Origin: Podarcis melisellensis
Lineage: Eukaryota
Assembly: GCA_964234715.1 (NCBI GenBank)
Contig: OZ174281.1
DNA length: 64,000 nucleotides
Reading direction: 5' to 3' (one strand)
Numbering within the stretch: position 1 is the stretch's first letter; every line of letters starts with the position of its first letter. The position numbers and the translations under genes were made by a program. The notes beneath the pieces were generated by a model that did not search any database, was not told where the DNA came from, and saw only the letters and a program-made list of their open reading frames with translations. Of the stretch, positions 2,941 to 34,000 are shown one piece after another.

Positions 2941-3119
2941 ACAACCTATGGAACGACCAGAATCTGGAGGCAGATCTTGATCTTCCCCCAGGATGGAGGA
3001 AAATCCACGACTCCTCTGGGACCTACTACTGGCATGTGCCCACGGGCACCACCCAGTGGCAACACCCATCTTGCCCCTCTGGTTTAGCACACACTGGGGA
3101 AGCTGCATTGCCAGAAACG
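2941..3119 (+). CDS. APBB3: APBB3 WW-domain exon
   Basis: ctctttag|AC...ACG|gtatca; translates (D)[45 protein letters not shown]. Confidence 0.95.
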
Positions 3120-6100
3120 GTATCAGGATTCCAAAGCTTTTGTGTGTATGATTGACAGGACCCATGTGAAAAGTAATGCCAGCAGCCCAACCCTTGTTCT
3201 CTCTAGGGCTGCTGTTTCTTTACATATACCCATAAATGCAGACTTGCCTGTCTCTCGTGGTGACACATATACAGAGCCTTGTGTGGTAAAATTTAACAGA
3301 GTAGTAACTGTGTACTGTCAATCCCACCTGGCACCATTTTTGTAGGTTTGCATGCTTCTGCATGATCTTCTTGTTCTTACTGGGCAACAGGGACTTCTGG
3401 CTTACAAAGCTGACTCCATTGACTGATAACATCCAGAGGGCATGAACTGGGATGGGGTCAACTGAGTCCCTCGACTGGGTGAACAGCTGTGGAGAGAGGG
3501 AGATTACAGCTGCATTTTCCATGGCGCTTCTGCTGTAAAATGCAATGTCTTAAAAAGCCTAAATTCGTTTACTTGGATTGATTTCAGTGGGTCTTCCAGG
3601 TATGTTTAGGATTGTAGCATTAGTCAGCAGAAGCTATCCAGTAAGGCACTGTGAATGCCTAGGATAAAATAGATGTAATCAATGCTAAGATCTATTGATT
3701 TGCCATAATGATCTTTTTTTATTCATGCAGTAAAGTAACATTGTCTATTGGGGTACCAAACTGCTTTCCATTAGGACTTGGCTCAATGCATCTGTTTTGA
3801 AAATCATGATAGAATTTGCGTTTTTAGAAGAAAACAAATGGAGAGTACAACAAAATATGCCCTCAGCTCCTTTCACAAGTTCTCTCCTTCACAGCTCCAG
3901 CCAGCCCAAAACAGAAGTCCTTGTAGTGCTGTTTGGGGTTTGCAGATGACATGTTTTTTTTCTTTCCCACCTTTCTGAAATGTTCCTGTGCTGTCTAAAT
4001 AGTGCTAAAGGACTCAGTACTTCATTAGAAGTGTGGGGATAAGAGCTTTTTAATATCAAGGTATAGTACTCCAGACTACTATAGTGGCTTAAGCTGGCCA
4101 ATTCCCTCTCCCCCTCCTCCCGGGATTTTCCTTTCTTTTTTATATAAAGAAATCCTCACAAATGTTTCATAGCTCAACTGCTCGCAACCATAGACTGAAT
4201 TTCTACATACACACTTTAGCTGCTTGGCTGGGCCTCAATGTTAATAAAACAACAGTGCCACATTCTCTTCACTTTCACAACCTTCTTTTCTGTCTTCATC
4301 CAGGATCTTCAGGTTGCAACAGTAAGACGTCTGCCAAGGGAGAGACCTATCCCAAGTCCGATGGCATCGCTGCCCAGAAGGTAGGGTTGTCTCCTGGGGG
4401 CAGGAGCATTTCATCCAAACACTAGGGCACATCGAATCTGAGTAAAAGTGAAAGAGGGCTCTAGGACCTGTTCATGGTCTCTTCAGGTGACCTCACAGGT
4501 AACCCAGCTCTGTGCAGATGCAGAAGCAAGCAGGTTTGTTTCCATCCCACAAGTCTTTGGTCTAACTTTTGAGTTATAAAGAAATACTGATCCTCTGCTC
4601 CAATCTCCATCCTACTCAGATGGCTCCACCAAAATGGGAAAGGACTGGGTTTTGCAAAGTACAGGCTGGAGGTGCCTGGTCCCTGCAAATCACATCAATA
4701 GGGTTAGAGCTGACAAGCCTTTGGTTAGGACCAATGGAGGCTGGAACCATTGAATTAAACTTAATGTAAGTGAATTAAACTTAATGATGTGTTGGAGAGT
4801 TGAGAGAACGATGGGATCCACAGCTGCCACTCTGGGGATGAAGAGACGCTCGCTAGAGTTATGCCACGACTGAGAACCTCCATGTCACTGCTATGCTTGT
4901 CTACCTGTTACAGGACATCAGTGAGCTGGCATGGGGAGGAGCATCACCAGGGCAACCCAGAGCTTGGCTCCAAGGTACAGTCAGGTGAGGTGGGGGACAC
5001 AGGGGGTACGTAGCTCAGAAACCTGGCTGATTGAGGAAGCCCCTTTCTTTGAGGCAAGGGGTCCAGATTCAGCATAGGTAAGGCCCTTCCTTGGAGGCTG
5101 CTGCAGAAAATTTACCCCTCTGTGAGCTTTGTTTGTTTCTTTATTAAATTTGTATACTGCCCTATACCCATATATCTTGGGGCAGTTCACAACACAATAT
5201 ATCAGGCTCTGCATTGGAACCTGGGAGTCTCTCTTATTTTGGAGAAGCTGGCATGTGTCACCTTCTGGTACTGTTCTGAAAATCATGGCAACTGCTTTGA
5301 ATATTCCCTTGGCATTTTACAGTGCATTCCCAGTATCACTCAATATGTTTTAACTACCCTTTCATTCATGTGAAAGATTGGCTAGATGGTATAAATGAGT
5401 AATCTATGCATGTTGAGTAGTCTTATCCATGTCCTTTGTGATGTTCCCTCAACTATCCTTGAACCTTGTGGCCCCTTTCCTTGATAAAATAGCTTATCAA
5501 GTAACTGAACTATTTTTAACTAGTTAACCTATGGTTAACCTATGTGGTTTTTTTTTAAAAAAACTGAATGATACCTCTCTTAAAATTATTTTTAAAAATT
5601 ACAAGCTCCTTCCCCAGAACTTAAACACAGCCCAAGTATTTTGAAATCTATTGTTTTAGTTGGATAAGTTGTAATTTTAATTGTGAACTGCCTTGTGTGC
5701 TGTGCTTGGTGAAGACAGATGACTAACTGTGCCACACATCCCTGTTGTCAGATTACTATAAACATGTATAAAGTACCCTGCCTCAGAAGAATAAGTTATT
5801 CAGTCCAGAGTTACCTAATACCTAATCAGAATTAAACAGCTCTTAAATCACACAGCACTGCAAGTCCAATTTATAGCAAAATAGTAATTAAAGAATGCTT
5901 GAGGAAGCAGGGGAGGGAAGGACTTTCTAAAAGCAAATTTTCAGGATTGGAACTTCTACCACTTCCAGTCAGATATTATCTGCAGAAGAACTTGTCTCTG
6001 ATGTGGGCAGGAGATAATGGCCTACCCTTTTACGTAGGTTTATGCTTGACAGCATCTCCCTGCGGTATCATTTTGAGAGTTCACATACAATTACACAAAG

Positions 6101-14549: not shown

Positions 14550-16553
14550 CAAAGCTGCACCTGAATGTTCCGACAATGTTCCCTGGCATGTGGAGTAGGC
14601 AGCACCCAGCGCATCACACAGGCTTAAAACGTTGCTCCTGTTTGCTCAGGGTGGGTTATGGAACAGGGCAGAGCAGGCATGCCAGCTTGAAGCAGTAGCT
14701 CCACTTGGTTTTTGCAGTAAAAGCTGTGAGTATCGCTACTCTTCCTTCCCCAGCTTGTAGCATGAATGCTTGGCGTACGAAACCTGACTGCAACCCTAGG
14801 CAGGCCATGGAACAGCCACTCGTGTTAATTTGCGGCAGCAAATAGATGCTTGTGAGCCTCTGGATTTATCAAATGTCAGTACAGATACACATTTCCCTTG
14901 AAAAGTGACAAATAGTCTCTTCTTTTTGAACTGGCACACTGAGATATAAGGACTCTCTCAATCCTCCTCCCTCCCTAAATCTGCTCCCTAACAGTTTAGG
15001 GGGCACACAGGGGGAGGAGGGGGGGTCCACGTTTTATTGTGCAATTGGATGTTCTTCACACAGTGCTATGTTACACTGTTCCATCGATGCCACCACACTA
15101 TTATCTCTTCACAGTGTAGCCTGCAACAGGCCTGTGTTTCTTTGGCAACGTCTGGGCTAATCCTTTAACTTCTGTACATGCTGTAGCAACTATTCTTTTG
15201 AAACAAGCCAGTGACCATAATGAAGCCTAGAATAATCAAAGGGTGCACTTAGTTCCAGTGCTCACTAGCAAAATGTCTGGTATGTGAGTGAGAGAGTCAT
15301 CAGCACTCATTACTGTCCTAATAACACCAGCATGCCTAGTCAGGCACTTGGATTGGGAACAATGAATTGACCAGGCCATCACTGTAGGACCCAATGCTGG
15401 CTAGCAACTCTGACAGACAAAAGTGATTCACACTTGTAAGATGCAGGTAAGGAGAATATAAAGCTGCCTGTGGATTCTCTCCCCCCCCCCCATTTTTTTA
15501 AAAAAAGAAAGAGCCTATAAATATTGAGAGCTTATTGCACCAACATTGGCAAAAGTGACTGCTGAGTCTCATTTGATCTGTGTCCAGAAATGGGGAGTGA
15601 GGCTGGTGCGATGAAAGGGTAAATCTCCAAACACGTTCCTTTCTTTTCTGTTTGGGAGATAAGGTAACCCATCAACTTTATCTTATTTATAACTAGCCCC
15701 AGATTAAGATAGACTCAAGTCTACCTCAGTGATACTTTATATCTGATCATTTGTGCAAATAAACTACTAATATGGAAGAAATCTAGAGTTGTTTTATCTT
15801 TGGTCTCTGTTTCCAGGTAATTTTATTGGGGCTAGAATGAGCTGCTGATCTGGGTGGGAAATGAATGACTTCCCTTTGGTGTCACTGTCCAGTGCCAACT
15901 CTATGGCCATGCTCACTTCAAGGCTAAATTGGAAGTGGAAAATGCCAAGTTCTGAATGAGGAGCTGAGTCCTTTTCTATGATATAAGTAGGCAGAAAGGG
16001 GGATAGGCAGCAAGTAAGCCTAGACTGAATAGCTCCTGCCTCCTGTGGTTTGTTACCTACCATGAATGGCAGCCGAGAAGTGGAGTAAATGGAAGGAGTG
16101 AATGGATATTAGCAGGAACAGTGTGAGGTCTGCCATCTGTACAGCTGCTCATTTTCAAATGTGCCTTGGTCCAAAGAGTAGGGATATCTGCAGAGATTAG
16201 TCCTTTAGGAGAAAAACTACCAAAGGCCTATTAAAGCCCAAAGATAAATGCCTCCATACAGAGGGAACGTCTATGAAAGGGATCAAGGCCCAATGAAAAC
16301 AACCTATGAGAAATTCAGGATTGTACCTTTGCGGTACGCTTAAGGACAGGAATCTTGTGATTGAACTCAAACACTGAAAATATAGTAATTCGTGCTGGAT
16401 TAATTTTAGACAAAGCTGTTAAAATGACTTAACCCAAAGGGCTTATGGAAATACTGGGCCTTGGGCTGTGCACTTTTATGAAACGAAAAGGCAAAGATGC
16501 AACAGACCATTAGCTGTGCAGACATTGGCATGCAATAAAACAAAAACTCTGTA

Positions 16554-19510: not shown

Positions 19511-22500
19511 TCACTTATTCAGTCATCCATCTATTTGTTTCATGGAATTTGTAAACAAACCAGCAAACAGCCCCTGCAAGCGGCTCTCTGAATGTGACCC
19601 CTGCAGGAGCCTCTTGGACTGTCCATCTCTTCCTGTGCTGAGATGGGTCAAGATCCCCACGCCTGCCAGGAACGCAGAGNNNNNNNNNNNNNNNNNNNNN
19701 NNNNNNNNNNNNNNNNNNNNNNNNNNNNNNNNNNNNNNNNNNNNNNNNNNNNNNNNNNNNNNNNNNNNNNNNNNNNNNNNNNNNNNNNNNNNNNNNNNNN
19801 NNNNNNNNNNNNNNNNNNNNNNNNNNNNNNNNNNNNNNNNNNNNNNNNNNNNNNNNNNNNNNNNNNNNNNNNNNNNNNNNNNNNNNNNNNNNNNNNNNNN
19901 NNNNNNNNNNNNNNNNNNNNNNNNNNNNNNNNNNNNNNNNNNNNNNNNNNNNNNNNNNNNNNNNNNNNNNNNNNNNNNNNNNNNNNNNNNNNNNNNNNNN
20001 NNNNNNNNNNNNNNNNNNNNNNNNNNNNNNNNNNNNNNNNNNNNNNNNNNNNNNNNNNNNNNNNNNNNNNNNNNNNNNNNNNNNNNNNNNNNNNNNNNNN
20101 NNNNNNNNNNNNNNNNNNNNNNNNNNNNNNNNNNNNNNNNNNNNNNCACTCCAAGCCACAGGGCCTTCTGTAGAAGGAAGGGCTGCTGCTCAGAAGTCTT
20201 GCTTGCATTATTAGTTTTTAAAAAACAAAATTGTACCCATAAGAAACATGCAAAGAGCTGAAGCTATTACAAAGGGCAAAATACATAAAACAGAATGAAA
20301 TACATTAAACAGTTAGCTTTATTATTAAAACCAGACATTATGTGAGGATAAGCGCTTGCTCCCCTGAAGACCTCAACTTGTCACCCCCACAAACGTCTCC
20401 CTAAAATTGCCACTCTAAAGGCAAAGCTGGCTGTTTTTTATTTGTATTCTAATAAAATGTTATTCAAATACCCAGTCGATCTCCCAACTGTGAGATTTAA
20501 CTTGTTGAACAAAGCTGCTCTTAATTCTCATAGACTGGGCAGCCAGTAAGTCTTGAGGCAGATTTCCTCCATGTGGGCAAACTCTCTTCATAAGTGATCC
20601 AGCAATAGTGTCCTTCAACTATACTATGGCAGAACACATAGGCTGGAACTGCAGAGCTGTAAAGGCTTTTCTCTGTTTAATATTTGTGATGCTGGTTACA
20701 TAGTGAGGGCAAGGAGTCTAAATGGATAGTTTGGCATAGGTAAAGGTAAAGGGACCCCTGACCATCAGGTCCAGTTGTGGCCAACTCTGGGGTTGCGGGG
20801 CTCATCTCGCTTTATTGGCCGAGAGAGCCAGCGTACAGCTTCCGGGTCATGTGGCCAGCATGACTAAGCCGCTTCTGGCGAACCAGAGCAGCGCACGGAA
20901 ACGCTGTTTAACTTCCCGCCAGAGCGGTACCTATTTATCTACTTGCACTTTGACATGCTTTCGAACTGCTAGGTTGGCAGGAGCAGGGACCGAGCAACAG
21001 GAGCTCACCCTGTCGCGGGGATTCAAACTGCCGACCTTCTGATTGGCAAGTCCTAGGCTCTGTGGTTTAACCCACAGCGCCACCCGTGTCCCCAATTTGG
21101 CATACCAAGGGGCAAATTTGGACAGACAAGCAGAAGCGCAATCAGCACAAAAATCATGCTTTAAAATATGAGATTTCATGTGGCGAGATGTCCAAACTCA
21201 GAATGTCCAAAGGAAGGCCATGCTTATCAATAACTTGTAGCATTTCCTAATTCCAAGATGGGCTTGAAGATCATAACGTAAAACAGAAATAAAAGTCAGT
21301 TCCAGAGATTGACAGGCACACAGCAAGAGTCACACAGGAATTTTTCTTTATGAACATCACAAGTGTGACTATGGGTTCCCACAATGAAAAGTGCTGTGAG
21401 AGGCCTGTGAAAATTTCTCAGACGAGTCCAGTCTGCCTTCACAGTTCGCCAGAACTCATTAAAGTCTTTAATATGGTTTAGGGTTTGAAGCTGGGCCAGG
21501 ATATTTTGTAAAGTAGATGTGTTTGCATCTGCCTGTTAATGCTCAGTAGCCTTTGAGTCAGCTTTTTTTTTTTCATCAGCCATATTTTTTTCAGTGTTGG
21601 TTTCTGCCGCTTTTTTTCTTTCAGCAGCTCTCTTGTTGGTAGACATCTTAAGTTGTAAAGAGATAGTAGAAAGTTCATTTACCATTTGACATTAATCTTT
21701 TGGCAGCACAGAGCTGCTTTCCAAGTATTTAGTCGGAGCGATCAGAAGGACGTCCCTCACAGCTCCATTCCCAGACCGGAGGCCCCACCCCTTTCTTCTT
21801 GGAGAAAGTTGTGACCTGCTTAAGGATTACTGATGCAATTCCTGGACCCACCTCAGAATTGCACTCTTTCTGCTAGTGGTTTCCCATCAGATATATCTAT
21901 TTAAAAATATTCTGTGAAACTCTCAACATGAAAGTGCTTCATTCAGCCCAATTTTTAAAGGGATCAATAGATATTCTTCAGAAAAACTGGTCATCCTCTG
22001 AGAGCTATTTGGTTTTGATCAGGTGGTTGGGTTTTTGTGTGATGTGTGTTCTAAGGAAGTGTGTGCAGAAATTCTGAGGGTGGGAACTACATAGCTGAAT
22101 CAAATTTATTTATTTACTTACACAAATATTTGTATACTGCTATTCTTAAAAAGAAATGAAAGCTGTGTACAACAATTGTACATAAAAACATACAACAAAA
22201 AAATACAAAGTTGGAATCAGCTAACTATTGTGGAAAGCTGTCTTCTTAATTCCCTGCATAAGCCTGATGGAATAGAGAAGTTTTCATCAGATGCTTAAAA
22301 GTTGAAACAGAAGGTGTCTGCTGAACATCTGTTGACAGAGCGTTCCACAATACTGGGCAAATGACATAAAAGTCTTGGTTTCTATCTAAGGGGTGTAGCT
22401 TTGCTTTGCTTTGCTTGCCTGATTCTGAGACCCAGAATTCGATTTTCTCTATACACTGGTTGTATGCTTGATTGTGTCTTTCTCCTGACTTGTATTTTTA

Positions 22501-24381
22501 GCACCTGGTCCAGAAAGTGCTACCTGCTCAGCAGCGTCGTCAGCTGTTCCACCGCCACCGGTGGGCTTGCCTCCTCCTGGTTTGCCAGGCCGCTCTATGA
22601 GGGTAGATGCCACAAACCAACCCGCCACTGAGGCTGGAGAGGATTGCCATGTGGAGGATGTTCTTGCCCCCTTGAATGAGGCTCTGGCCAATTGCAGGAG
22701 ATCTGTACCCGTAAGTAGAATTGCTGCCTTTTCAGGATTTCCCCATTTTACTTTGGAGGGAAGAAAGTTCTTTTGCCTCTTTATGAGCAGTTGTGGTCTG
22801 CTTCGTTGTACTTAAGTGATTAGTTGATCAGCTAGAGCAGAGGGTGTGGGGGCACATTTGGAAATCTAAGAAGGTGTAATGGGCACCATTTCACAGAAGA
22901 AAAAACTGGCACCTCAAAAAAAGCACTTTTTTTTTAAAAAAAAGCTGGCCGCCTTCCCCCACAACTCATGCCCCAAGCAAGTAGGTAGCAAAAACCCCAG
23001 ACAAAACATCTTCTAATAAACAAATGGCATAACACTCCCAGTAACTACAGAAAGACGAAAAAGAAGAGAAAGATAGCAAGCAACCCCCCCCCAAAAACAA
23101 CAACAACATAAGACATAGCAAACAAAAACACAGGCAAAATGATCCCCAGATTTTGGAGACATTCTGGGGAAAGGGAAGTAAAAGGATGAGATAGCAAGAT
23201 GCTTGCAGTTTTCCAGCCACCTCTATGTGCATGTAAGCCAAATACCTAAAGAATTGAGGTGCTAATCATTAGAAATATATAGAGTGAGGCTTCTATCTCT
23301 TGCATTACTGTGGATCACATCTCAGTGTAGCATCTAACATTAAATGGTTTTGACTTTCTGTAACTGGAATTCCACCAGGTCTAGATATTATATAAAATTG
23401 GAGCTCTGTTGTTGTGGACTTCTTGCAATGAGGGCTTGATTAATGTGTCAGGCAGTGTTGAAAAGATGGCATCCTCAGTGAGCTAGAGACTGTGCCAGAC
23501 TCTGAAAATAGATGGTTTAACTAGGACATCATATTGAACTATGGTTTGGCACGATGTCTGCAGTGACAAATCTTAGGTATAGCTATTGCTTTAGCAGAGA
23601 TTAGAGTGAAATTATAAAACTGGTAGGATGAAAATGAAGGCAGGCGGACAGCTTTACCCAGGTTTTGCTTTTTTGTGAGCTCAAAGCTAATGAGGGTTTT
23701 GCCATTCCCTTTTGTCTTAAGAGGACCAAGAAGACTGTGGTGAGAAGTTATAAACATAACCTTTGCGAGATGTGCTTCCTAATAAGAATTGCATTTTTCA
23801 GAAACAGGTTTGTGATGACATCAGCAAGCGCTTAGGGATCCTGCAGCAGATGTGGGTACAAGGGAAACTCTCTGCCCCAGTGAGAAAGGGAATGAAGATT
23901 CTGACACAAGGTAAGCAGCAAGGACAAGGTTCAATGCTCTGCGGCAACATTCCTCATTGTAAACCCTTATCTTACAGCCTCTGGCCACCTTAAATAATCC
24001 CTATAGCAGAACTACTGCTGCAGTAGGATTAGCATGCAGTCCATGTGTGTGGCCTGTGGAGCCACAAACATCTGCATTCCTTAATTCTTTAGTGACTTAG
24101 GAGCTAGGGTCAGGGGAAGCAGTTGAATTGGGCTACTTTTTCATTACCTTTTGCAGTTCTGAGATGCTTTCTTTTTACTTTCAGAGCTCAAGCAGCAGCA
24201 CTGGGATGCAGCTGATGAGATCCATCGCTCACTAATTGTGGACCACGTCACTGAAGTGAGCCAGTGGATGGTAGGAGTGAAAAGGCTCATTGCAGAAACA
24301 AGAAACTTGCATACAGAAGATCTGGCCACAGAAGATTACGAGCAAAAAGTTGAAACCTCTTTGGAACCAGAATGCCAGTAA
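19037..24381 (+). CDS. SRA1: Steroid receptor RNA activator 1 (SRAP), 238 aa, 5 coding exons
   Basis: Exons 19037-19061 (MAELYVKPG), 19168-19344 ([17 protein letters not shown]), 22502-22710, 23802-23910 ([27 protein letters not shown]), 24185-24381 ([32 protein letters not shown]...*). All introns GT-AG; total 717 nt. Confidence 0.96.
19680..20146. other. Assembly gap (N run) in SRA1 intron 2
   Basis: 467 consecutive Ns. Confidence 0.99.
20739..21093 (-). mobile_element. Sauria SINE, full length
   Basis: tRNA-derived head (GGGACACGGGTGGCGCTGTGGGTTAAACC on minus), (ACCTTT)n tail, TSD TTTGGCATA at 20730-20738 and 21096-21104. Confidence 0.92.
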
Positions 24382-25064
24382 GATTAGGGCAAGTCCAAGG
24401 AGTTGGCAGTATAAGACTGGGCCTGCAGGGGACTGATTTCCTAAGCAGCAGAGGAAGGTGTTTTATCTCCTGAGCATTGGTGACCTACTCAAGTTAATTT
24501 TTGCCAATCTGACCAAAGCTCAAAGCTTAAGGAGAATCTCTCAAGTAAGCTGGAGAATTCTGTGTAGCTATTTGAAATTGGTGACTGTGGTTAAAAACAG
24601 CCAGCCCTTTCTGGACTTGGTACAAAATGGAAGGAAGTGACTTGGTGATGCAATTGTAATGCCAGTGTACAATGAAAGTCCAGACTGATACATGTGGCAC
24701 TGAAACTAAGAGCTTGCACTTACAGCTACTGCTGCTCTGGAGTTCATTTCAGTCTGGATAAGGTTCCTGGTCTTCATTTACAGGCAACGACCGATTTACA
24801 TGTGACTGCACGCATGCGCATTGCGGCAACCCAGAAGTGGCTGGAAAAGGGGGTGGAATGGGGAGGCGTGGGCTTGTGCATGCTCCACTGCACATGATGA
24901 CCTGAAATGCACCCCCCCACACACACACAGATCCGGTTGCATGTACCTTGTATTTTTCATTCAAATCTTTCTAGGAAAACGTAGACTGTACAAAAGTGAG
25001 GTCTCATGTTTCCCAGCAATTGCATCTCCGTCCTCAGCAATTCAACCAAAATGAGGGGATAGAT

Positions 25065-25314
25065 CATGGGTAGGCAAACTAAGACCTGGGGGTCGGATCT
25101 GGCCCAATTGCCTTCTAAATCGGGCCCACAGACGGTCCGGGAATCAGCATGTTTTTACATGAGCAAAATGTGTCCTTTTATTTAAAATGCATCTCTGGGT
25201 TATTTGTGGGGCACAGGAATTCGTTCCTCCCCACCAAAAAAATATAGTCTGGCCCCCCACAAGGACTGAGGGACAGCGGACCGGCCCCCTGCTGAAAAAG
25301 TTTGCTGACCCCTG
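25065..25314. mobile_element. hAT-superfamily MITE
   Basis: Imperfect TIRs CATGGGTAGGCAAACT / AGTTTGCTGACCCCTG; perfect 8-bp TSD GGATAGAT (25057-25064, 25315-25322). Confidence 0.88.
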
Positions 25315-25766
25315 GGATAGATGCTATTTCTATTTTATTTTAAAGGAACCATTTTTTTACTGCAATGTCTTCATTGTAGAGAGGATATTGTGCTGCTATA
25401 ATTTTTTTACTGTAACCCTCTACTGGCTTCCATTCAACCAGTTCCCACTGTGACGTTCTTTCCACATGCCCTTGGGGCAGCGTGGAGAATATGATGACAA
25501 CAGTTGCTGTGCATCCTGCTTCTTTCAGTCTTAAAGACTGCAGTTTAATTCTGGAAGTAATTTTTCCATTGTGGCAACTATTGAAGGTTACTATAGTAAT
25601 TCAATTAGTAACATTCCATTAACCTTTGGGTGGGGAGTTACTGTTATTCAGCAATGATCCTTCTGATTGGCTGACAGCATCTAAGTTTTTGTGGTTTTTT
25701 ATTTTTTTAAAAATTGGAATACTGTGTACACAGTTTCAAGGTAACATTATACTTAATTTCCCCTTT

Positions 25767-25838
25767 ATCTCACATGGGGTTCAAACCCAGAACCCTGAGA
25801 TTAAGCATCTCACGCTCTACCGACTGAGCTACGACAGC
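25767..25838 (-). pseudogene. tRNA-Lys(CTT)-derived pseudogene or SINE head
   Basis: Minus strand GTAGCTCAGTCGGTAGAGCGTGAGATGCTTAATCTCAGGGTTCTGGGTTTGAACCCC matches the vertebrate tRNA-Lys-CTT D arm and anticodon arm; acceptor stem broken and T-loop TTCGA changed to TTTGA. Confidence 0.75.
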
Positions 25839-26628
25839 TCAGTGACAGCATCTATAAGTTAAGGCTTATGTTACCTTAATTTTGCTAATTCTTAGAAAAA
25901 AGTCTTGTATCTTAACTTGTATAATACACATATTAAACGAGTTCCCAGCTTCCAGCTGTTGGCTGCAAATGGGCCTCTTAAATGTCTTGCTGTACACAAG
26001 CATAACAGCAGCTAGAAGCCAATGACACCTCAGAAACAAGGTGTCAAGTCTGCATCCTCCATCTAGGCTGTACTGGCCATTGCCAACAGTCTACATGTTG
26101 GCATGATTCACACATTATGCTAAACCAAACCATGGCTTAGTATGAGCACGTGGGTTCTAGAAGAGACAGCAGCCACTTTGCTCTTCTGCCATGCTGAGCT
26201 AAGCCATAGTTTGGCTTAGTGTGTTGTCTGAACCCAGACTTATGGTTTAGCTCTCTCCAGACTAACCCATGGAGTTGTGACCAAGGGTTGCCCTATGATT
26301 TTGCTCCTCTTATCTCAAGTGTTCCAAGAAGCACCTCCCAACACTGCAACACCAACAGTGAAAAACAATAGCAATTGTATTCAGTGATTTACTTCCCAAT
26401 GTTTTAGATTCAGCTGCCCTGCCTTGGTTTCTTACCTACTAGAGGCAGTTTGCTCTACAAATATAGTGTCCAAAGGAGTCAAACTGCAAGTCAGTGTAGG
26501 GCAAACATGGAGCACTGGACTAGCCATAAAGCTCACTGGGTGACCTTGGGCTCCTTCACTAGCTCTAATCTGCCTCAGGGCTGAGAGGAGAAAGCTGGGG
26601 AGCTTGGTCAAAATTGTGCATAAAAAAT

Positions 26629-26634
26629 AATAAA
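26629..26634 (+). terminator. Possible distal SRA1 polyadenylation signal
   Basis: First canonical AATAAA noticed downstream of the SRA1 stop, followed by a GT/T-rich tract; could instead be a repeat tail. Confidence 0.3.
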
Positions 26635-26834
26635 CTGCTAGAATCCTTGTGTAGTTTGTTTTAAATATAAGGACTCATACTTTACGTAGAATAAAAATAC
26701 AAGCATACCCATATATTAAAAGACCCTACAGGAAAGGTGGGTGGCCACAGAAGGGATTTTTTCTTCAGTGCGTCTCAAACTTTAGTCCACCACCTGTAGT
26801 TTCTCAATGTAGACTCTATACCAACAGTCAGGGA

Positions 26835-26946
26835 GTTCTCCAGGGTTCAAACAGCTTTCTCAGCCTTATGTAGAACTGCTGGAGGCAAAACATGGACCTT
26901 CTGCATGCAGAACATATGTTCTACCATTGAGCTATGGTCCTTCCCA
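26835..26946 (-). mobile_element. Short tRNA-derived squamate SINE (degenerate)
   Basis: Minus strand GGGAAGGACCATAGCTCAATGGTAGAACATATGTTCTGCATGCAGAAGGTCC with an A-box; a related copy lies near 33690-33750. Confidence 0.6.
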
Positions 26947-29900
26947 AAGATAAATTTTAGGTACCACTTAAAAATGCTTTAGCTTTTGGCAGCATTACAT
27001 TTGATTGGCTCTTGTTTGTGTACTGGTATTTAGTTTTAATCTATTAGCATGATTAATTTCAATTTTAATGGTTTTAAAACCATCTTTGGGTAGTAGTCAA
27101 ATAAATTTTACTCAGAGTAGACCCACTGAAATTAATGTGACTGTTAGGTCTACTCAAGAAAGGCCAACAACATATGCTGCTGCAGTGAAAAAGGTACTTG
27201 GCTGCCTTTGAGCAAATGGTTTTTACCCACAATACCCACATGCCACGGCATGTTTCCCAAATTCATACATTGTAGGCTATTGGCTGGGCTAGACTCAGGT
27301 GTTAAAAGGGTGTTGGGAAAAGTTAGCACAATAGACACCTCAGATTAGGGAAACATTTGGTTTTCAGTCTCCATTCCCTTGATCTCAGCCCACACCCAAG
27401 AGGCCCTGTTAAAAATGGCCTTGTGATGGTACTGCACACCTGCAGCTCTATCTTACAACAGCAACAATCTCTCTGTGATGCTGGAGATACAAGAAAGTAA
27501 AAGGCAGACATATGCTCATCTGGAAGGAGTGTTGGGCAGCAGAATTTTGGGAAGTTGTGTTTGCAGAAATCTGATCACAAAACAAAACTTATAGCCAATC
27601 CCCACCGTGGCTCTTTGGGGATGGCCCCCAGGCCCATAGAAAGATATTTACAAATAAGATACTTACAACTGCAAGAATGCGAATATCAAGATATTGAAAC
27701 TATCTAGGTGTAAGCAAAGAAAAATATATGACCAAGTATGGCCATATCAGAGAAATTGAATTATCAGCTTGGATTAAGCAGAGACTTAAATAACTCCCCC
27801 CCCACCCCGTTTGGGAAAAAAAATTCTTCATGCAACAGCCACATAATCCTAATACAATACACCAACGTCCAGAACTTGTTACCAGCACCACACAATATTG
27901 ATATTAAAAGTTTTTCTTCAGAAGATCTCTAAATACCGAGATACAGGGATATAGTTGTGAACTCTGATCGATACTCTGATGCTGTAGAATCCTTCTGACT
28001 TCAATATTTTAATTTATGGATATGATTTGTAATTTGTGAATTGTCCTAATGCATTCCAAGGCTATTAGCTGTGTTTTTCTTTTCTGTACTCTATCTTCTT
28101 TCATGAATAAAAAAATAGTCTCCCCATCCGAGAGATACTTGGTAACATCCAAAATTAGTCATACTTCCGGCTAATGTTGGATATATGGGGTAGCTTTGAT
28201 TATAAGGAAGAGGACTAAAATACAACTGTCAGTACGGTAATGTCCTAATATGTAGTTGCAGTGCAGACACACTTGGAATACTTTGCACAATTCTGACAAG
28301 CCCATCACAAGGTATCGTAGGGTAATAAAAATGAATGGGGAACTGGAATACCTTTCCTACCAGGAAAGACTATGTTTGGAGCATAGGATAGTGTTTTATA
28401 AAATTATGTATAGTGTGGAGATTCATTCATTAGCAGTGGGTTGTTGGTTATAAAAGACTGAGGTGAAAGCCCTTGATTAAGGTCATTTTGCAATTTGTAC
28501 CAAACAATTATGTCACTGTTAGCTTTAAGGATTGTTTTTTTCCCCCTTGATACCATAAAGATTCACTAACAGCATTGTAGTGGAATTCCCTCCACCACCC
28601 CCAGGTGGTGCTAGACGAGCTGCTCGACAAACACAACTTGGACAGACTATCAGAATAATGCAACCAAACAGACACTAACAAATGCACATGGTACAACACT
28701 GAAAATGAGAAGTGTGTGTCAAAATCTTGCTCCTAAGGCTGGTGAAAAACATCCATGTCCTCCATTTAATCACTCTTTAACAAAACTCTCACAAAGGGAA
28801 GAGATGTGCTGCTCTTGCTGCCACCAGAGGCTAGTCTTTGTCCTAATAACATACATTCCACAGGGTACACTCCCAGCTGAGTTTGTACAGGCTACATTCC
28901 TAGTCATGTGTACCAGAAATGAAGGAAGCCAGACTTGCTTCCAACCCAGGAATTTGGGTGCAGTGGAGATTTAAAAAAACCCTAAATTACTATTTTCTTA
29001 TGTGTTTTGCACTTGTAAAGGACAGGTAAACATCTCTTCCTCAAAATTTACACCTGTTGAATGTAACGTTCAAACCCTGCAAAATAGTAAGACTCTTTCT
29101 TCACCTGGGAATTTTGTGTGTTCAGGCAGGCTGGAACAATGTGCAAAAAGCTACTGCTGTATCTTGGAACTTTGATGTCACAAGGTGACCAGATTTGGCA
29201 GTTGAGATCACACTTCTATAAACGGGAATCTACTCTCAATTCACTTTACATATTGCAGTATTTGGATTAACAAAAACCCCATCAAACCATGTCTACTTGT
29301 CCATCAGCTGACTTCACCCAGCTGGGTTAATTTCCTGTGGGTTAACTTTGGCAGGTGGGTGGGCTCTGCCCATCTGTTAAAGTTGGCCACGGGGTAGGGA
29401 AGTTACACAGATATGGCCTGCCAGGCCAAAAAGGTTCCCTACCGATGCTCTAGGGGGTAGGATCTGAACAGGAAGATCTTAGTTCAAAACCCCTTTCAAG
29501 TATTAAGCTCACTGGGGGAGCTTGGCAATTGAACTGCTACATAGAATTACAGATTCCCAATTCTTCTCTACATCCTGAGCATTTGGAGAACTTACTGATT
29601 GTATCTGCCCACAATAAATTTGATTATTATACACAGAGTCCTGCATCATACTCACCATTGGTTACCAAAAGACTAAGTGCACCAGTGTATTATGTGCAGC
29701 CTTGCACTATTTAGGTGATGAGCTGCCTTTTCCCTAGTCAGCAACTAGTTTCACTACTGGGCCACACTGTGAAGGAGATGAGTGTGTGGCCTGCTGGCAA
29801 GCCCCGTTGTGTTAGAAACAAATTAGCCTTCTTCTGTGCACTCCAGCCAAACACAACTTAGTATTTCTGCTTCTGCACGGCAAGCTCTTCCAAATCCAGA

Positions 29901-30598
29901 AATACGACAAACTGTGTGACAAGTTAATTAACTGATGTTGAGGTTTCATATTAAAGTAGCCAGTTTTAGAGCATCGCTATGAAATATGACTTAGGGCACC
30001 AGCACAGTAAAGTCACCTACTTCCCAAGGAAGAAACATGGCTTTGGCATAGCATCTCGTAACTCTGCAAGTCCATTTTTGAGAGTTGAAGTCAGAGAAGA
30101 ATTTTCCATGTTTAAAGATAATTTAATTTTAGTTCTGAGGTGTATGTTGGGTATAGATACCTTAGGTTGGTATGGAATGTGTACTTAAATATGAATCTGT
30201 TACTTAAGTGAAGGAGCTTGATGTGTTGTTATATGTACTCTTAACACCTGCTGGTGATTCTTTGGTTGGTTTGTTCTGTGTTAGATTTCTGAGTACCTAC
30301 TTTAACCTGGTAGACTGTGTCCGCTGAATAAAGCTACCCTTGGCTACAGTGCTGAGGAGGCAGCTACCATGGCCGTCCAGTGATTCAACCATATTCTAGA
30401 TTTCTCTGACTTTCTATCAAATACGAGAACAGATAATAGTACTGGAAACAGTGTTGTATATAGTACAACAGTTTTCTAAAAGTGCTGGGAATCTATTAAC
30501 GATCTTAAAATTAAGTACTGACAGTACCAATCCAATGGTACAATCTTGCAACTGGTATTTCATTAAAATCATTACACAAAACTTATAATGTTCATCTT

Positions 30599-30604
30599 TT
30601 TATT
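30599..30604 (-). terminator. ANKHD1 polyadenylation signal (AATAAA on minus strand)
   Basis: TTTATT on plus, ~440 nt after the ANKHD1 stop, followed on minus by a T/GT-rich element (ttttgtgtaatgatttt). Confidence 0.65.
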
Positions 30605-31042
30605 GAATATTCAGGTAAATATTTCACATTAATACAGGCTACATAAAGTAGAGCCACTATACGACATGAAATTTACTCAACGTTTTTACTTTTAAGTATG
30701 TAAACAATTATACATGTATTTATCACCCTAAAAGGTTGAAATCATGTACTCATCTAGTTCTCTGCTGCATACAAGTAGCATTCAGTAGTGTTTAGCCAAA
30801 AGCACTAGGTTCATCCGATTTTGAGTTCAAAATGGCTAAACTAACTGGAGAACAGAATCAGTTGAATAGGTAACTCATTTTGTTCTTACACAATGGGCAA
30901 ACAAGTTTCTCTTGTTATAGCCCGCAGAAAAATTGCTTAGTTAGGCACATTAAAAAAATTCCCAAGTTCTTCCAAGGTCATATGTTTCTCCAAACAAGGC
31001 TTAAAAAAAAGAAAAGGAAAGAAAAAGGTAGGCCCTCCTAAA

Positions 31043-34000
31043 TCAGTTGACGTATTTGAGGTGCATGTTTCCAATGTGAGGCGCCCAGGTGCCAGGCCAA
31101 ATCTACAGGAGGAGAAACATCACAAAATAGTTAATTTCAGAGTATGGTTCCATCACCACTATACAAAGACCTACAAAATCAAGTACTGCAAAAAACCAAG
31201 TTCTAGCTGACTAAAGCTTGGCCCCAACACCCAGATTTAATGATCAGCTATCCCACCAAGACTCCATTTTGAAGTACACTTAAGGAAAATGTAACATTAG
31301 GATGGAAGAATGAAGACACTCCTAGTACTCTTACAAAAATTCAATTATATTATTTAAGGCAGATGTTTGAAAATTTAATAGTACAAAAAGCATTAATTAC
31401 TGCACCTGCTGAGCATCGGTACATTCTGTTGAATTTTGGACAACCTTTATCATGGGATTCCATGCTGGATCTGGAGTATGCAGTCCATTGAAGAGAGGCC
31501 CACCTGGTCCATCAGCTAGCTGAGGATGAGACGGTATAATAGTGCCTCCATACATGGAAATTGGAAGGCCCTAAGGAGAGACATGGCAATTTACAGAAAA
31601 TGGTAGCAGAGAAACAGGTTTACAGATCAGTAGCAATTTTATTTGTAGTAACTAATGAGTACAATGCTACTGTTATGCAGATATTATCTGCAAGAATTCT
31701 ACACCACCTCTAAGAGGCTCCCGAGCATAGACTAACCAATTGGGATATTGGACCTAACAGACCTTCATGCCTAACAGCACATTTACCTACTGTACTGTAA
31801 GGTAGGGGTGACCAACACTGTGCCTGTGGGCTCCAGAATGCCCATAAGTACACACTCAACTAAAGCTCAGAGTAGACATGAGGGCCATTTCTATTGGGCG
31901 GACTCCAATTATAGAATGTTCTTCCCAGTGAAGCCTGTCTTGTGTCATCTTTTCAATTTCATGTTAATATTTTTCTGTTCTACAAGACTTTAAGATCTGC
32001 CTTTAAGTCTCTGCGATGTGGTTGATGCTTTAATGTACTAAACATATTTAATGGCTGCTATAGTTATATGCTATATATTGTATTTGATTGTGCTGGTTTT
32101 CTATTTGGGTTTTGGTGCTAATTTTGGTATAAGTATAACATGGCTGTTAATTATTAAGGTTCTTTTAATCCTCTATACAGTTCCTAGACAATTTATAAGC
32201 AAATAGGGTGGGATTCACCTAACAGTCCCCACCAACAGAAACCCTGCACAAGGACTTCTGCTTGGGAAATGGGGCTCCCCCCCCCAACTGGCTTGAGGGG
32301 GTCAGGAAAAACCTCCTGAACAGTGTTGGGAGGTCTGTTCAATCAGGCAAGCTGGAATACTTGTGCAAACAGAATGATTGGAATTCCACCCATAAACCAG
32401 TAGTTTGGAAAGTCTTCCTCTCCACAGTACATATACAATCCTTGATACTCAGGAGTAACTCATTACTGTGTAACAGGCTCTTCTTTCCTATACACAACAA
32501 AATGTAAGGCTGTTGTCACCTGGCAGTTCACATGGCTGCCAATAGCTGGGCACACCAACTCCAGTGTGACAACAGAACAGCAGGTAGGCAGCTGTGCAAG
32601 CAAATTGCTCTGTGAAGCACCTCCCTCTCTTTGCTAAATGCAGCTGCACCAAAGTTTAACAGAAGGAAGACACTTCAGAGAAAATTGAAGCATCTCTCCC
32701 CTCCTTTAAAAGGGGGTGGGACTTGGGGCGAGCTGTAAGGAGATAGGCAAGGGGTGAGTGAGGTGTAAAGGAATGAGGGAATGGCCAGGTGTGTGGGGGG
32801 GGGGGCGGGGAGAAGGGGTTTGGCAGGTAGGCAAGGTTGGCAAGTGGAACAAGCGGAGATACACAACAATACATATTAATACACAAAACGGCAAGCAATG
32901 CAGAATGTTATCCCCAATTAGCACAAATTGCCTATTAGACACCCCAGACAAACAGAAGTGATGCTATTCTGGAAGGACTGGAAGCTGAGAAGCTCCCAAT
33001 GTTCACAAACAGCTTCCATTGAGAGTACAAATTCTAAGAATGTTCCTACAGCTGTATGATTTAGTTTGATTTGAAGCAACTGTGTGGAGCTCTGTGCATA
33101 GTATGACTGTGCGCAAGTGTGAGAGAGAAACTTTTGAAAGCGTACTTTAGAGAAATCTACAAAGCTGTTCGGCATAGGCTGCTGGAAAATATTTGAGGGC
33201 GCCACTATTCCAGAGTCATCTCTCTCCATCGGCTGATGTTGGGAAAAGGTGCCAGGGTCCGACAGCTGCTGATGAACTGGATGATTTCCCATGACAGGCT
33301 GAGACCAACCTGACATGCCTTCTAGAAAGATAACGAAGCACTTGTTTAGGGATCAGAAAAATCTCTCGTATTAATCAAATTTTATCTCTCTTATTACCCA
33401 AAAGTTAGAAAAGCTCCTTCTTGCTGCAGGAAGAGCCCACCCAACTCTACACACACTGCTCTTCAAGGGCAGTGACCTTCCCATGGCAAATCCAAGGACT
33501 AGTTCTCAGTCCTCATTCTCCAAGATTAATGACTGTGTCCTTTAACAAAGTTTATCTGCCACCCTCCTGAGATTGCTGTGGCCTGAGGTTTAGGAACATG
33601 AGAAACTGCTTTATCATAACAAACTGTTTGCCCATCTAGCCCAAGTATTATCTGTAACTAGCAGCAGATAGTTCTGTGTCATCCTTCTAACTGGGGATTC
33701 CAGGGATTCAACCTGGGACTACCTCCATGCAAAACAATTGCTCTGCCATTTAAGGGTACGTTGTCCCTTTCCCTCCTCACCAACATCCTCTTGTACAATG
33801 TCCTGCCAGTGTCTCAAGCCAAACATGGTGCTAGCAGGACATACCTGCACAACAGAACTACTTAGTAGTAGCTGAAACTTCACTTACTGATTCACTGCAG
33901 CAATACCTACTCCCCAAGATACAAACTACTATTTGAAATTCAAAAGGACTTGCCTCTTCAGAAATAGAAAATGCTGCAGTAAAAAAATCAGGAATTAAAA

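Follow-up and report, generated by a model that had tools for sequence, protein, structure and literature searches.

The EIF4EBP3 slot between SRA1 and ANKHD1 is empty in a lacertid lizard and holds a decayed exon in geckos

Of the three eIF4E-binding proteins of vertebrates, 4E-BP3 has been studied least. Mammalian 4E-BP3 is reportedly induced transcriptionally and takes over translational repression under prolonged mTORC1 inhibition (PMC4915159), and the read-through between its gene and the neighbouring one, ANKHD1-EIF4EBP3, has been described as conserved (PMC10454556). An earlier note on DNA of the lizard Podarcis melisellensis had suggested that EIF4EBP3 is missing from its place between SRA1 and ANKHD1. 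Is the gene really absent there and, if so, was it lost or did it move?

The slot in Podarcis melisellensis

The whole stretch of DNA analysed (the window) comprises 64,000 nt of one strand (assembly GCA_964234715.1, contig OZ174281.1), and the Podarcis evidence for the missing gene has this scope. APBB3(+), SRA1(+) and ANKHD1(-) follow each other in the expected order and orientation, with synteny intact. Pfam SRA1 (PF07304) matches three plus-strand exons, at 22.5, 23.8 and 24.2 kb. The last of these coding exons (24185-24381, plus strand, stop codon at 24379-24381; Pfam SRA1, E = 1.7e-15), in which open reading follows the acceptor ...ttactttcag/AGCTC, is the left border of the slot and is 86% identical to that of Phrynosoma and 87% to that of Tiliqua. 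On the other side, the penultimate exon of ANKHD1 (31406-31570, minus strand) ends in ...TECTDAQQ/gt, and the last coding exon (31043-31102, minus strand, stop codon at 31043-31045) encodes IWPGTWAPHIGNMHLKYVN and a stop; this terminal peptide is identical in kiwi and Phrynosoma, and its opening WPGTW also occurs in gecko and skink. The ANKHD1 3'UTR (30560-31042, minus strand, AATAAA poly(A) signal at 30604) is 87-91% identical to those of Phrynosoma, Tiliqua, Eublepharis and gharial across about 500-600 nt. What other amniotes use as the EIF4EBP3 slot thus corresponds to 24382-30559 (about 6.2 kb, no strand assigned), which contains no exon, relic or CpG island. The earlier note had given the interval as 24400-31000, which is right for 24382-30560 but not for the last 440 bases or so (30560-31000), which are conserved ANKHD1 3'UTR. 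It had also called the interval gap-free: 24400-31000 holds no N at all, and the sole N run of the gap check (19680-20146) lies within SRA1.

EIF4EBP3 is gone from its usual slot in this lacertid, without recognisable trace, as motif, protein-profile, DNA-profile and CpG tests all bear out. No three-exon gene with a CpG-island promoter was found in the slot on the ANKHD1 strand, next to correctly oriented neighbours. A six-frame scan of the slot returned none of TTPGG, TPGGT, YDRKF, Y[DE]RxF[LMI], FEMD, CxNSP and RIIY, in keeping with the stated absence of an intact 4E-BP motif and of a C-terminal FEMDI. The eIF4E-binding motif YxxxxL-phi that characterizes eIF_4EBP (PF05456) is matched in none of the six frames of the slot, and neither TTPGG nor TPGGT of the exon-1 Thr-Pro sites (S/TTPGGT, twice) occurs in any frame. 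The DNA profiles of exon 1 and exon 3 are both negative in the window. Across the whole window, the motif scan gave two loose chance matches only, a bare IPGV at 25307-25318(-) that sits in a repeated element and FQMDL at 60904(+), which is unrelated and the sole match to F[EDQ]MD[IL]; of the TOS motif (F[EAK]MD[IL] followed by a stop), no FEMD was found in the window, the patterns scanned being narrower than the FAMDI and FKMDI variants of turtle, tuatara and gharial. The protein profile was built from 67 4E-BP3 proteins and DNA HMMs were made for exons 1, 2 and 3, the exons being queried individually rather than as a joined spliced model. The protein HMM reaches 4.4 bits at most (E about 20) in the window, at a place outside the slot, and the best nhmmer score within the slot on the correct strand is -1.0 bits, even with the gecko relics described below in the profile. 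Significant similarity to any 4E-BP3 exon, by which a unitary pseudogene would be recognized, was therefore not found in the slot of the lacertid window. The check that the earlier note had proposed, tblastn into the interval, was run with bird exons, and its matches stay inside shuffle noise. The interval has a GC content of 0.41, 55 CpGs and a CpG observed/expected ratio of 0.20, also obtained for the slot, and no CpG island (200-bp windows, GC >= 0.5 and observed/expected >= 0.6) was found across 21.1-61.1 kb, again as the note had it. One candidate was set aside: SPRLPIP (seven residues, 24830-24874(-)) matches cuckoo exon 1 at 20.8 bits, a score that shuffled queries exceed (up to 23.9).

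Could a working gene nevertheless be hidden here? A highly diverged functional 4E-BP-like gene that the searches missed is hardly credible. Transcript contigs from a relative cover 24400-28350 with graded depth, and therefore some transcription takes place in the slot, but these contigs show no splice joints, the nine longest minus-strand open stretches of the slot give no Pfam match at E <= 10, and the sequence of the slot is unconserved even between lizard families. Moreover, the identity of 4E-BP3 exon 2 stays at 74-100% over the range from chimaera to birds, and the slot has no YxxxxL-phi core in a 4E-BP context.

An assembly artefact, in which a real, GC-rich 4E-BP3 was dropped or collapsed, is very improbable too. 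GC-rich bird genes are known to drop out of assemblies, and that this gene can be hard to assemble is seen in kiwi, in which exon 1 falls within a gap (L003, N run 15564-15928). The depth of the source DNA run also drops at 27.2-30.4 kb, but dips of this sort can stem from the filter. Against an artefact, the slot is free of N, the source DNA contigs match the assembly letter-perfect over 24400-27131, and contigs of a roughly 96%-alike relative from three studies are collinear over 24400-30278, with short uncovered stretches between them and no large insertion. The same absence recurs in seven independently assembled squamate genomes.

The earlier note had described the interval as mostly SINEs and MITEs. 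About 2 kb of high-copy DNA and a tRNA-like SINE head agree with this description; the word 'mostly' is only partly borne out. In the source DNA run, where single-copy k-mer depth is about 40 and copy number could be judged outside 27.2-30.4 kb, high-copy blocks lie at 24.9-25.4, 25.6-26.6 and 26.8-27.2 kb. The first includes a very high-copy, MITE-like interspersed repeat (25055-25320, borders approximate, no strand assigned; k-mer depth above 1,000,000), and contigs from all runs are interrupted at 25089/25287. Depth is 2,000-5,000 over 25.6-26.0 kb, where the tRNA-like SINE head is located (25770-25834, minus strand; Rfam tRNA, 29 bits, E = 0.007). Comparison of the interval with the remainder of the window yielded no repeat copies, so the repeat content is read from k-mer depth.

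Intact genes in other vertebrates and absence in the squamates sampled

The same searches recover the gene where it exists. With the 67-protein profile, exon 2 scores 123-140 bits, in the same slot and orientation, in kiwi (L003:13399-13575, minus strand), cuckoo (L004:12748-12924, minus strand), the turtle Platysternon (L006:13030-13206, plus strand) and gharial (L007:12504-12680, plus strand), and Pfam eIF_4EBP matches the kiwi exon with E = 3.7e-18. At these four loci ANKHD1 is followed by 4E-BP3, tail-to-tail with SRA1, and the neighbours are those of the window; the bird, turtle and crocodilian loci hold a three-exon gene with an intact eIF4E-binding motif, whereas the window has none of it. 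The frog Dendropsophus was unusable as an outgroup for the slot, with a C1q/collagen gene downstream of SRA1.

Protein searches extend the distribution to all major jawed-vertebrate groups but squamates: named 4E-BP3 proteins are listed for tuatara, turtles, gharial, birds, a monotreme, marsupials and placentals, and likewise for frogs, salamanders, caecilians, lungfish, coelacanth, a chimaera and ray-finned fishes. The tuatara protein is known from a UniRef model rather than from its locus; its N-terminal part is apparently mispredicted, and it is 4E-BP3-like in exons 2-3 only. No squamate 4E-BP3 is named among the best 120 of 275 or the best 120 of 220 protein matches, in which Logan-derived sequences are nameless and could conceal a divergent squamate copy. 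The same protein collection contains squamate SRA1, from more than 20 species.

We compared the loci of Pogona, Phrynosoma, Tiliqua, Ahaetulla, Eublepharis and Heteronotia, with Anolis taken from the literature. An intact gene is absent at all seven, which form the squamate part of the synteny comparison proposed in the earlier note, and the sampled lineages with no working gene are Gekkota, Scincoidea, Lacertoidea, Iguania and Serpentes. Pogona, Phrynosoma, Tiliqua and Ahaetulla have no called EIF4EBP3 and no profile match, in slots that are partly covered in Pogona and Ahaetulla, where the 10-kb flank ends short of ANKHD1. When the entire ANKHD1-to-SRA1 regions of turtle and gharial were compared with the squamate loci by blastn, the ANKHD1 3'UTR alone was recovered. 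A weak protein match in Phrynosoma (L002:12516-12647, minus strand; 'LLPGGTHIYLEC...SVVART') resembles a relic of exon 2 by eye and scores 6.9 bits (E about 3-4); we did not count it, as it has no support at the DNA level and its score is typical of chance matches at other loci.

For Anolis carolinensis, the entry for Eif4ebp3, between those for Ankhd1 and Sra1 in a table of synteny at the protocadherin flanks, reads 'no homolog' (Jiang et al., 2009, PLoS One 4:e7614; PMC2764143, Table 1). The identical slot is thus empty in an iguanian as it is in our lacertid, but the table entry concerns a single species and is uncommented, with no relic test, outgroups or squamate-wide claim. A paper on squamate gene loss (PMC13005343) leaves EIF4EBP3, ANKHD1 and SRA1 unmentioned in its main text. 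The absence in Anolis was therefore tabulated, and the loss partly anticipated, in 2009; apparently neither its extent across the clade nor the relic in geckos has been reported before.

A decayed exon 2 in geckos

Two geckos keep remains of the gene in the slot. In Eublepharis macularius a relic of exon 2 lies at L008:16465-16611 (minus strand; nhmmer E = 5e-5) and in Heteronotia binoei at L011:19404-19580 (minus strand; nhmmer E = 8e-5); searched within their own slots with the gecko relics added to the profile, the E-values are 6e-6 and 6e-5, respectively. The two relics are mutually orthologous, and in both a preserved ...cag acceptor is followed by TRIIY. Their YDRKFLL motif is ruined (YASQLVQ and YMNQPVQ), and premature stops occur at codon 14 and codon 35. 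They are about 67% identical to each other, the same as the flanking intergenic DNA, which means that the gecko copy has been dead for a long time. Geckos and the lacertid share a squamate slot with no working gene, but geckos retain a recognisable dead exon 2 whereas nothing is detectable in the lacertid window. Indeed, neither the gene nor a recognisable relic of it occurs in the lacertid window or at five non-gecko squamate loci, and the gecko relic used as a bridge query finds no match in the window, Pogona, Phrynosoma, Tiliqua or Ahaetulla.

Since an orthologous decayed exon 2 remains in the slot, EIF4EBP3 of geckos died in place and did not move. This in-place death speaks against relocation, in which the gene would have left the slot by translocation or retroposition and survive elsewhere in this lizard or in squamates generally. 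We consider relocation improbable, bearing in mind that the genomic search covered the window and that the protein listings comprised the best 120 matches each; among the matches listed no squamate 4E-BP3 is named, though chimaera and teleost orthologues are. The empty window set against controls of 123-140 bits, the decay in place in geckos and the lack of a named squamate among the matches listed support loss, the first of the two explanations offered in the earlier note. That note had called the loss lineage-specific, which is right if the lineage is Squamata as sampled, and not if it is this species alone.

Very probably, then, inactivation of EIF4EBP3 came early in squamate evolution, once the tuatara lineage had separated, and decay at its original position followed. 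In the lacertid, substitution, small deletions and inserted transposons would have erased its remains altogether, and SRA1 and ANKHD1 now stand tail-to-tail with about 6.2 kb of partly repetitive, non-coding DNA between them. How many losses were there? Parsimony suggests that the gene was lost once, on the squamate stem. On the other hand, the gene may have been alive in the first squamates and have died separately in geckos, recently enough for a relic to remain, and in at least one other lineage. The relic is found in geckos only, no lesion is common to geckos and the remaining squamates, in which nothing comparable survives, and across the whole exon the gecko relic can still be recognised as similar to functional genes (E about 1e-5). 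Such independent losses would require two events or more although a single one is enough, all sampled lineages lack the gene and the gecko copy is itself long dead; we thus regard them as possible, if unlikely. The gecko relic offers a handle with which to date the loss.

Consequences of the loss and the ANKHD1 read-through

We lean slightly towards the broader reading that the common ancestor of today's squamates was already devoid of 4E-BP3 and of the ANKHD1-4E-BP3 read-through, geckos carrying the only molecular fossil. If this is true, about 11,000 lizard and snake species are a naturally occurring knockout, on the scale of a clade, of the translational-control branch that mammals reportedly switch on under prolonged mTORC1 inhibition, and a species-rich amniote clade lacking both products offers a natural test of how far that branch can be dispensed with. 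The loss also raises the question of compensation by 4E-BP1 and 4E-BP2, which presumably cover the remaining function. For annotators, neither EIF4EBP3 nor ANKHD1-EIF4EBP3 is to be expected in squamate genomes, and orthology tables in which squamate EIF4EBP3 is 'missing' would be correct and not a sign of assembly failure.

Lineage-wide gene losses are common, and the loss of EIF4EBP3 is thus unsurprising in kind. TCR gamma/delta (PMC11754216) and the dopamine transporter (PMC4894405) are reportedly likewise conserved vertebrate genes missing from an entire reptile clade, among squamates or sauropsids. Other genes and pathways are affected there, and some of these losses reportedly came about by segmental deletion, whereas the gecko relic of EIF4EBP3 points to decay by point mutation.

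The read-through (MASK-BP3) can be followed from its ANKHD1 side. The donor ...TDAQQ/gt is kept in the window at 31406 and is the same in kiwi and cuckoo; bird annotations join it to 4E-BP3 exon 2. In the window the acceptor exon of the read-through is lacking and the canonical terminal exon at 31043-31102 is the only usable one. Because the acceptor exon is gone, the read-through product would have been lost together with EIF4EBP3, as judged from the sequence. The recorded ANKHD1 products are 2583-2600 aa long in squamates, compared with 2685-2781 aa in two birds.

Borders and content of the intergenic slot

APBB3 (+ strand) occupies about 7-15 kb of the window, as placed by open-stretch listing and Pfam, with a PTB/PID match on the exon at 13.2-13.6 kb. 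SRA1, on the same strand, has a promoter CpG island (18.7-19.65 kb), exon 2 at about 19.16-19.35 kb, Pfam SRA1 exons at 22.5, 23.8 and 24.2 kb and a last exon at 24185-24381 (stop 24379-24381). The SRA1 exons share 93-95% identity with those of Podarcis muralis, against 60-80% with other squamate families, so the source is a lacertid other than P. muralis. The sole assembly gap of the window, a run of N at 19680-20146, falls in an SRA1 intron between exon 2 and the 22.5 kb exon. ANKHD1, on the - strand, fills the window from about 31 kb onward. Its penultimate exon (31406-31570) ends in ...TECTDAQQ followed by gt, and its last exon, reading IWPGTWAPHIGNMHLKYVN, has its acceptor at 31102 and its stop at 31043-31045. 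Identity across species marks 30555-31042 (-), with AATAAA at 30604, as the ANKHD1 3'UTR, which stands out for its conservation: over about 500-600 nt it shares 87-91% identity with the corresponding DNA of Phrynosoma (an iguanian), Tiliqua (a skink), Eublepharis (a gecko) and even the gharial. Since this 3'UTR fills the DNA below the ANKHD1 stop, the true intergenic slot, the usual place of EIF4EBP3 (4E-BP3), spans about 24382-30560. The interval from which the earlier note had reported EIF4EBP3 missing (24400-31000) runs some 440 bases into the ANKHD1 3'UTR.

The slot holds no N, in agreement with the description of the interval as gap-free. The reported lack of a CpG island also holds: the interval has a GC content of 0.41 and a CpG observed/expected ratio of 0.20, and no island-like CpG stretch occurs between 21.1 and 61.1 kb. 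The description as mostly SINEs and MITEs is borne out in part: k-mer depth in the source-organism DNA run was informative for the first 2.8 kb, of which high-copy DNA makes up about 2 kb. A MITE-like element at about 25055-25320 exceeds a k-mer depth of one million in that run, and the tRNA-like head of a SINE lies at 25770-25834 (-). Contigs from all four runs break at the edges of the MITE-like element, which has no second copy within the 64 kb window. The longest open stretch of the slot (28615-28971, +; 119 codons) has about the length expected by chance for 6.6 kb on both strands.

Logan contigs were compared with the 6000 letters of window 24400-30399. Those from source-organism DNA match letter for letter over 24400-27131; depth dips beyond 27131, as the tool's filter can produce. 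Contigs from a relative about 96% alike (three studies) are collinear over 24400-30278, with short uncovered stretches between them, small indels only and no splice-like joint. Contigs that are exact or collinear and free of such joints argue against both misassembly and a hidden spliced gene. The depth of the relative's contigs drops steadily from 121 beside SRA1 to about 4 (121, 92, 66, 31 and 8 over 24400-28350, downstream of the SRA1 stop), and neither AATAAA nor ATTAAA occurs on the + strand between the SRA1 stop and 25932. The signal beyond this stop, in contigs that carry no strand, suggests a long SRA1 3'UTR or run-on transcription.

4E-BP3 in control loci and in the window

We queried a representative protein library with the last exon of SRA1, named the matches by cluster and then took their loci. 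In kiwi and cuckoo, 4E-BP3 exon 2 and exon 3 (...DQDQFEMDI) lie between SRA1 and ANKHD1 on the ANKHD1 strand. The turtle (Platysternon) and gharial loci come from the 275 4E-BP proteins that a word search with the kiwi exon gave; 4E-BP3 is tail to tail with SRA1 in the former, and the order is ANKHD1, 4E-BP3, SRA1 in the latter. Judged by these four loci, birds, a turtle and a crocodilian have 4E-BP3 in the same slot as humans.

Some bird copies look relaxed. Cuckoo exon 1 (L004:14140-14259, -) reads SSMPGGT rather than S/CTPGGT and its C-terminus (L004:12572-12634, -) FEMGI; chicken 4E-BP3 (P0220) reads CKISSGARTLP and FEMDL. The C-terminal motif is FAMDI in turtle and tuatara and FKMDI in gharial. 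In the frog Dendropsophus ebraccatus, synteny at the SRA1 border differs, with a collagen/C1q-domain gene downstream of SRA1 (L005:24319-28102, -) and not 4E-BP3 or ANKHD1, though frogs have named 4E-BP3.

EIF4EBP3 is absent from the lacertid slot, with no trace left; motif, tblastn, profile and Pfam searches, all negative, bear out the earlier note. No diagnostic 4E-BP motif was found in any of the six frames of the slot; over the whole window, the loosest patterns alone matched, twice and by chance (a bare IPGV within a repeat; FQMDL at 60.9 kb, unrelated). The proposed tblastn check, run with bird 4E-BP3 exons on the window, gave nothing exceeding shuffled queries. A profile of 67 4E-BP3 proteins, which gives 123-140 bits for exon 2 and 23-29 bits for exon 1 on the four control loci, scored at most 4.4 bits over the whole window, outside the slot. 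At the DNA level, profiles for exon 1, for exon 2 and for exon 3 with its 3'UTR had no match in the window, and stayed empty when limited to the correct strand of the slot and with gecko relics added. Pfam had no match on the nine longest - strand open stretches of the slot (control: kiwi exon, eIF_4EBP, E 3.7e-18).

Squamate loci and gecko relics

Over 20 squamate species are represented by SRA1 in the protein collection; the loci of six were compared. The distance from the SRA1 stop to the ANKHD1 stop is 6.3 kb in Phrynosoma (L002), 3.9 kb in Eublepharis (L008), 3.2 kb in Tiliqua (L009) and 3.8 kb in Heteronotia (L011), and exceeds 10 kb in Pogona (L001) and Ahaetulla (L010), where ANKHD1 was not reached within the 10 kb flank. 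This synteny comparison revealed no annotated gene between SRA1 and ANKHD1 (0/6 loci, Pogona and Ahaetulla covered for 10 kb only) and no 4E-BP3 gene. No 4E-BP3 profile matched in Pogona, Phrynosoma, Tiliqua or Ahaetulla beyond a 6.9-bit hit in Phrynosoma, which was rejected as noise.

Both geckos keep a dead exon 2 in mid-slot on the ANKHD1 strand (Eublepharis, L008:16465-16611, nhmmer E 5e-5; Heteronotia, L011:19404-19580, E 8e-5). The two relics are orthologous and retain the acceptor ...cag and the TRIIY codons; in place of the eIF4E-binding core DRKFLLEC they read ASQLVQVC and MNQPVQVC, respectively, and stops follow the ruined core at codons 14 and 35. Between the two geckos the relics are about 67% alike, much like the intergenic DNA on either side, against 84% for the ANKHD1 3'UTR region, so the relic is drifting neutrally. 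The relics show that gecko EIF4EBP3 died in place through point mutation and small indels and not through translocation or block deletion. Of the loss or relocation proposed earlier, loss is supported, the lineage being Squamata as sampled.

Read-through and history of the loss

Kiwi and cuckoo ANKHD1 products (longest annotated, 2685 and 2781 residues) end inside 4E-BP3 exon 2 (L003:13421-13594, -, and L004:12770-12943, -) in a frame other than that of 4E-BP3, with an open stretch ...RYPHHLRPQVPAGVQEF...AQGAE before the stop. The bird annotations therefore carry an alternative-frame read-through of the MASK-BP3 (ANKHD1-EIF4EBP3) type. Squamate ANKHD1 products on record have 2583-2600 residues. 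With the acceptor, 4E-BP3 exon 2, gone from the slot, ANKHD1 can end solely in its own last exon, which supports the suggested loss of the read-through product.

Every squamate lineage sampled (Gekkota, Scincoidea, Lacertoidea, Iguania and Serpentes) lacks EIF4EBP3; tuatara (by protein model) has 4E-BP3, as do all other major gnathostome groups. Among the best 120 matches of each word search (kiwi exon 2; tuatara exons 2-3), named 4E-BP3 comes from tuatara, turtles, gharial and many birds; platypus, marsupials, placentals, frogs, salamanders and caecilians; and lungfish, coelacanth, elephant shark and many ray-finned fishes. Squamates are not named among these best 120, which is strong, not absolute, evidence, as it extends to those matches and to entries that carry names (Logan-derived ones have none). 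The most economical reading is that EIF4EBP3 would have been inactivated once, on the squamate stem, its remains then eroding wholly outside geckos. Separate inactivations in different squamate lineages may have occurred instead, with no lesion comparable between them.

Our literature search found no paper pairing 4E-BP3 with lizards; the single relevant item is Table 1 of Jiang et al. (2009), whose Anolis entry for Eif4ebp3, placed between Ankhd1 and Sra1, reads 'no homolog' (PMC2764143). The loss was thus partly anticipated in 2009; what seems new is its extent across the clade, the contrast with tuatara and the gecko relic. Events of this kind are ordinary. EIF4EBP1 at least is reported to be expressed in a lizard, Anolis sagrei (PMC9203151).
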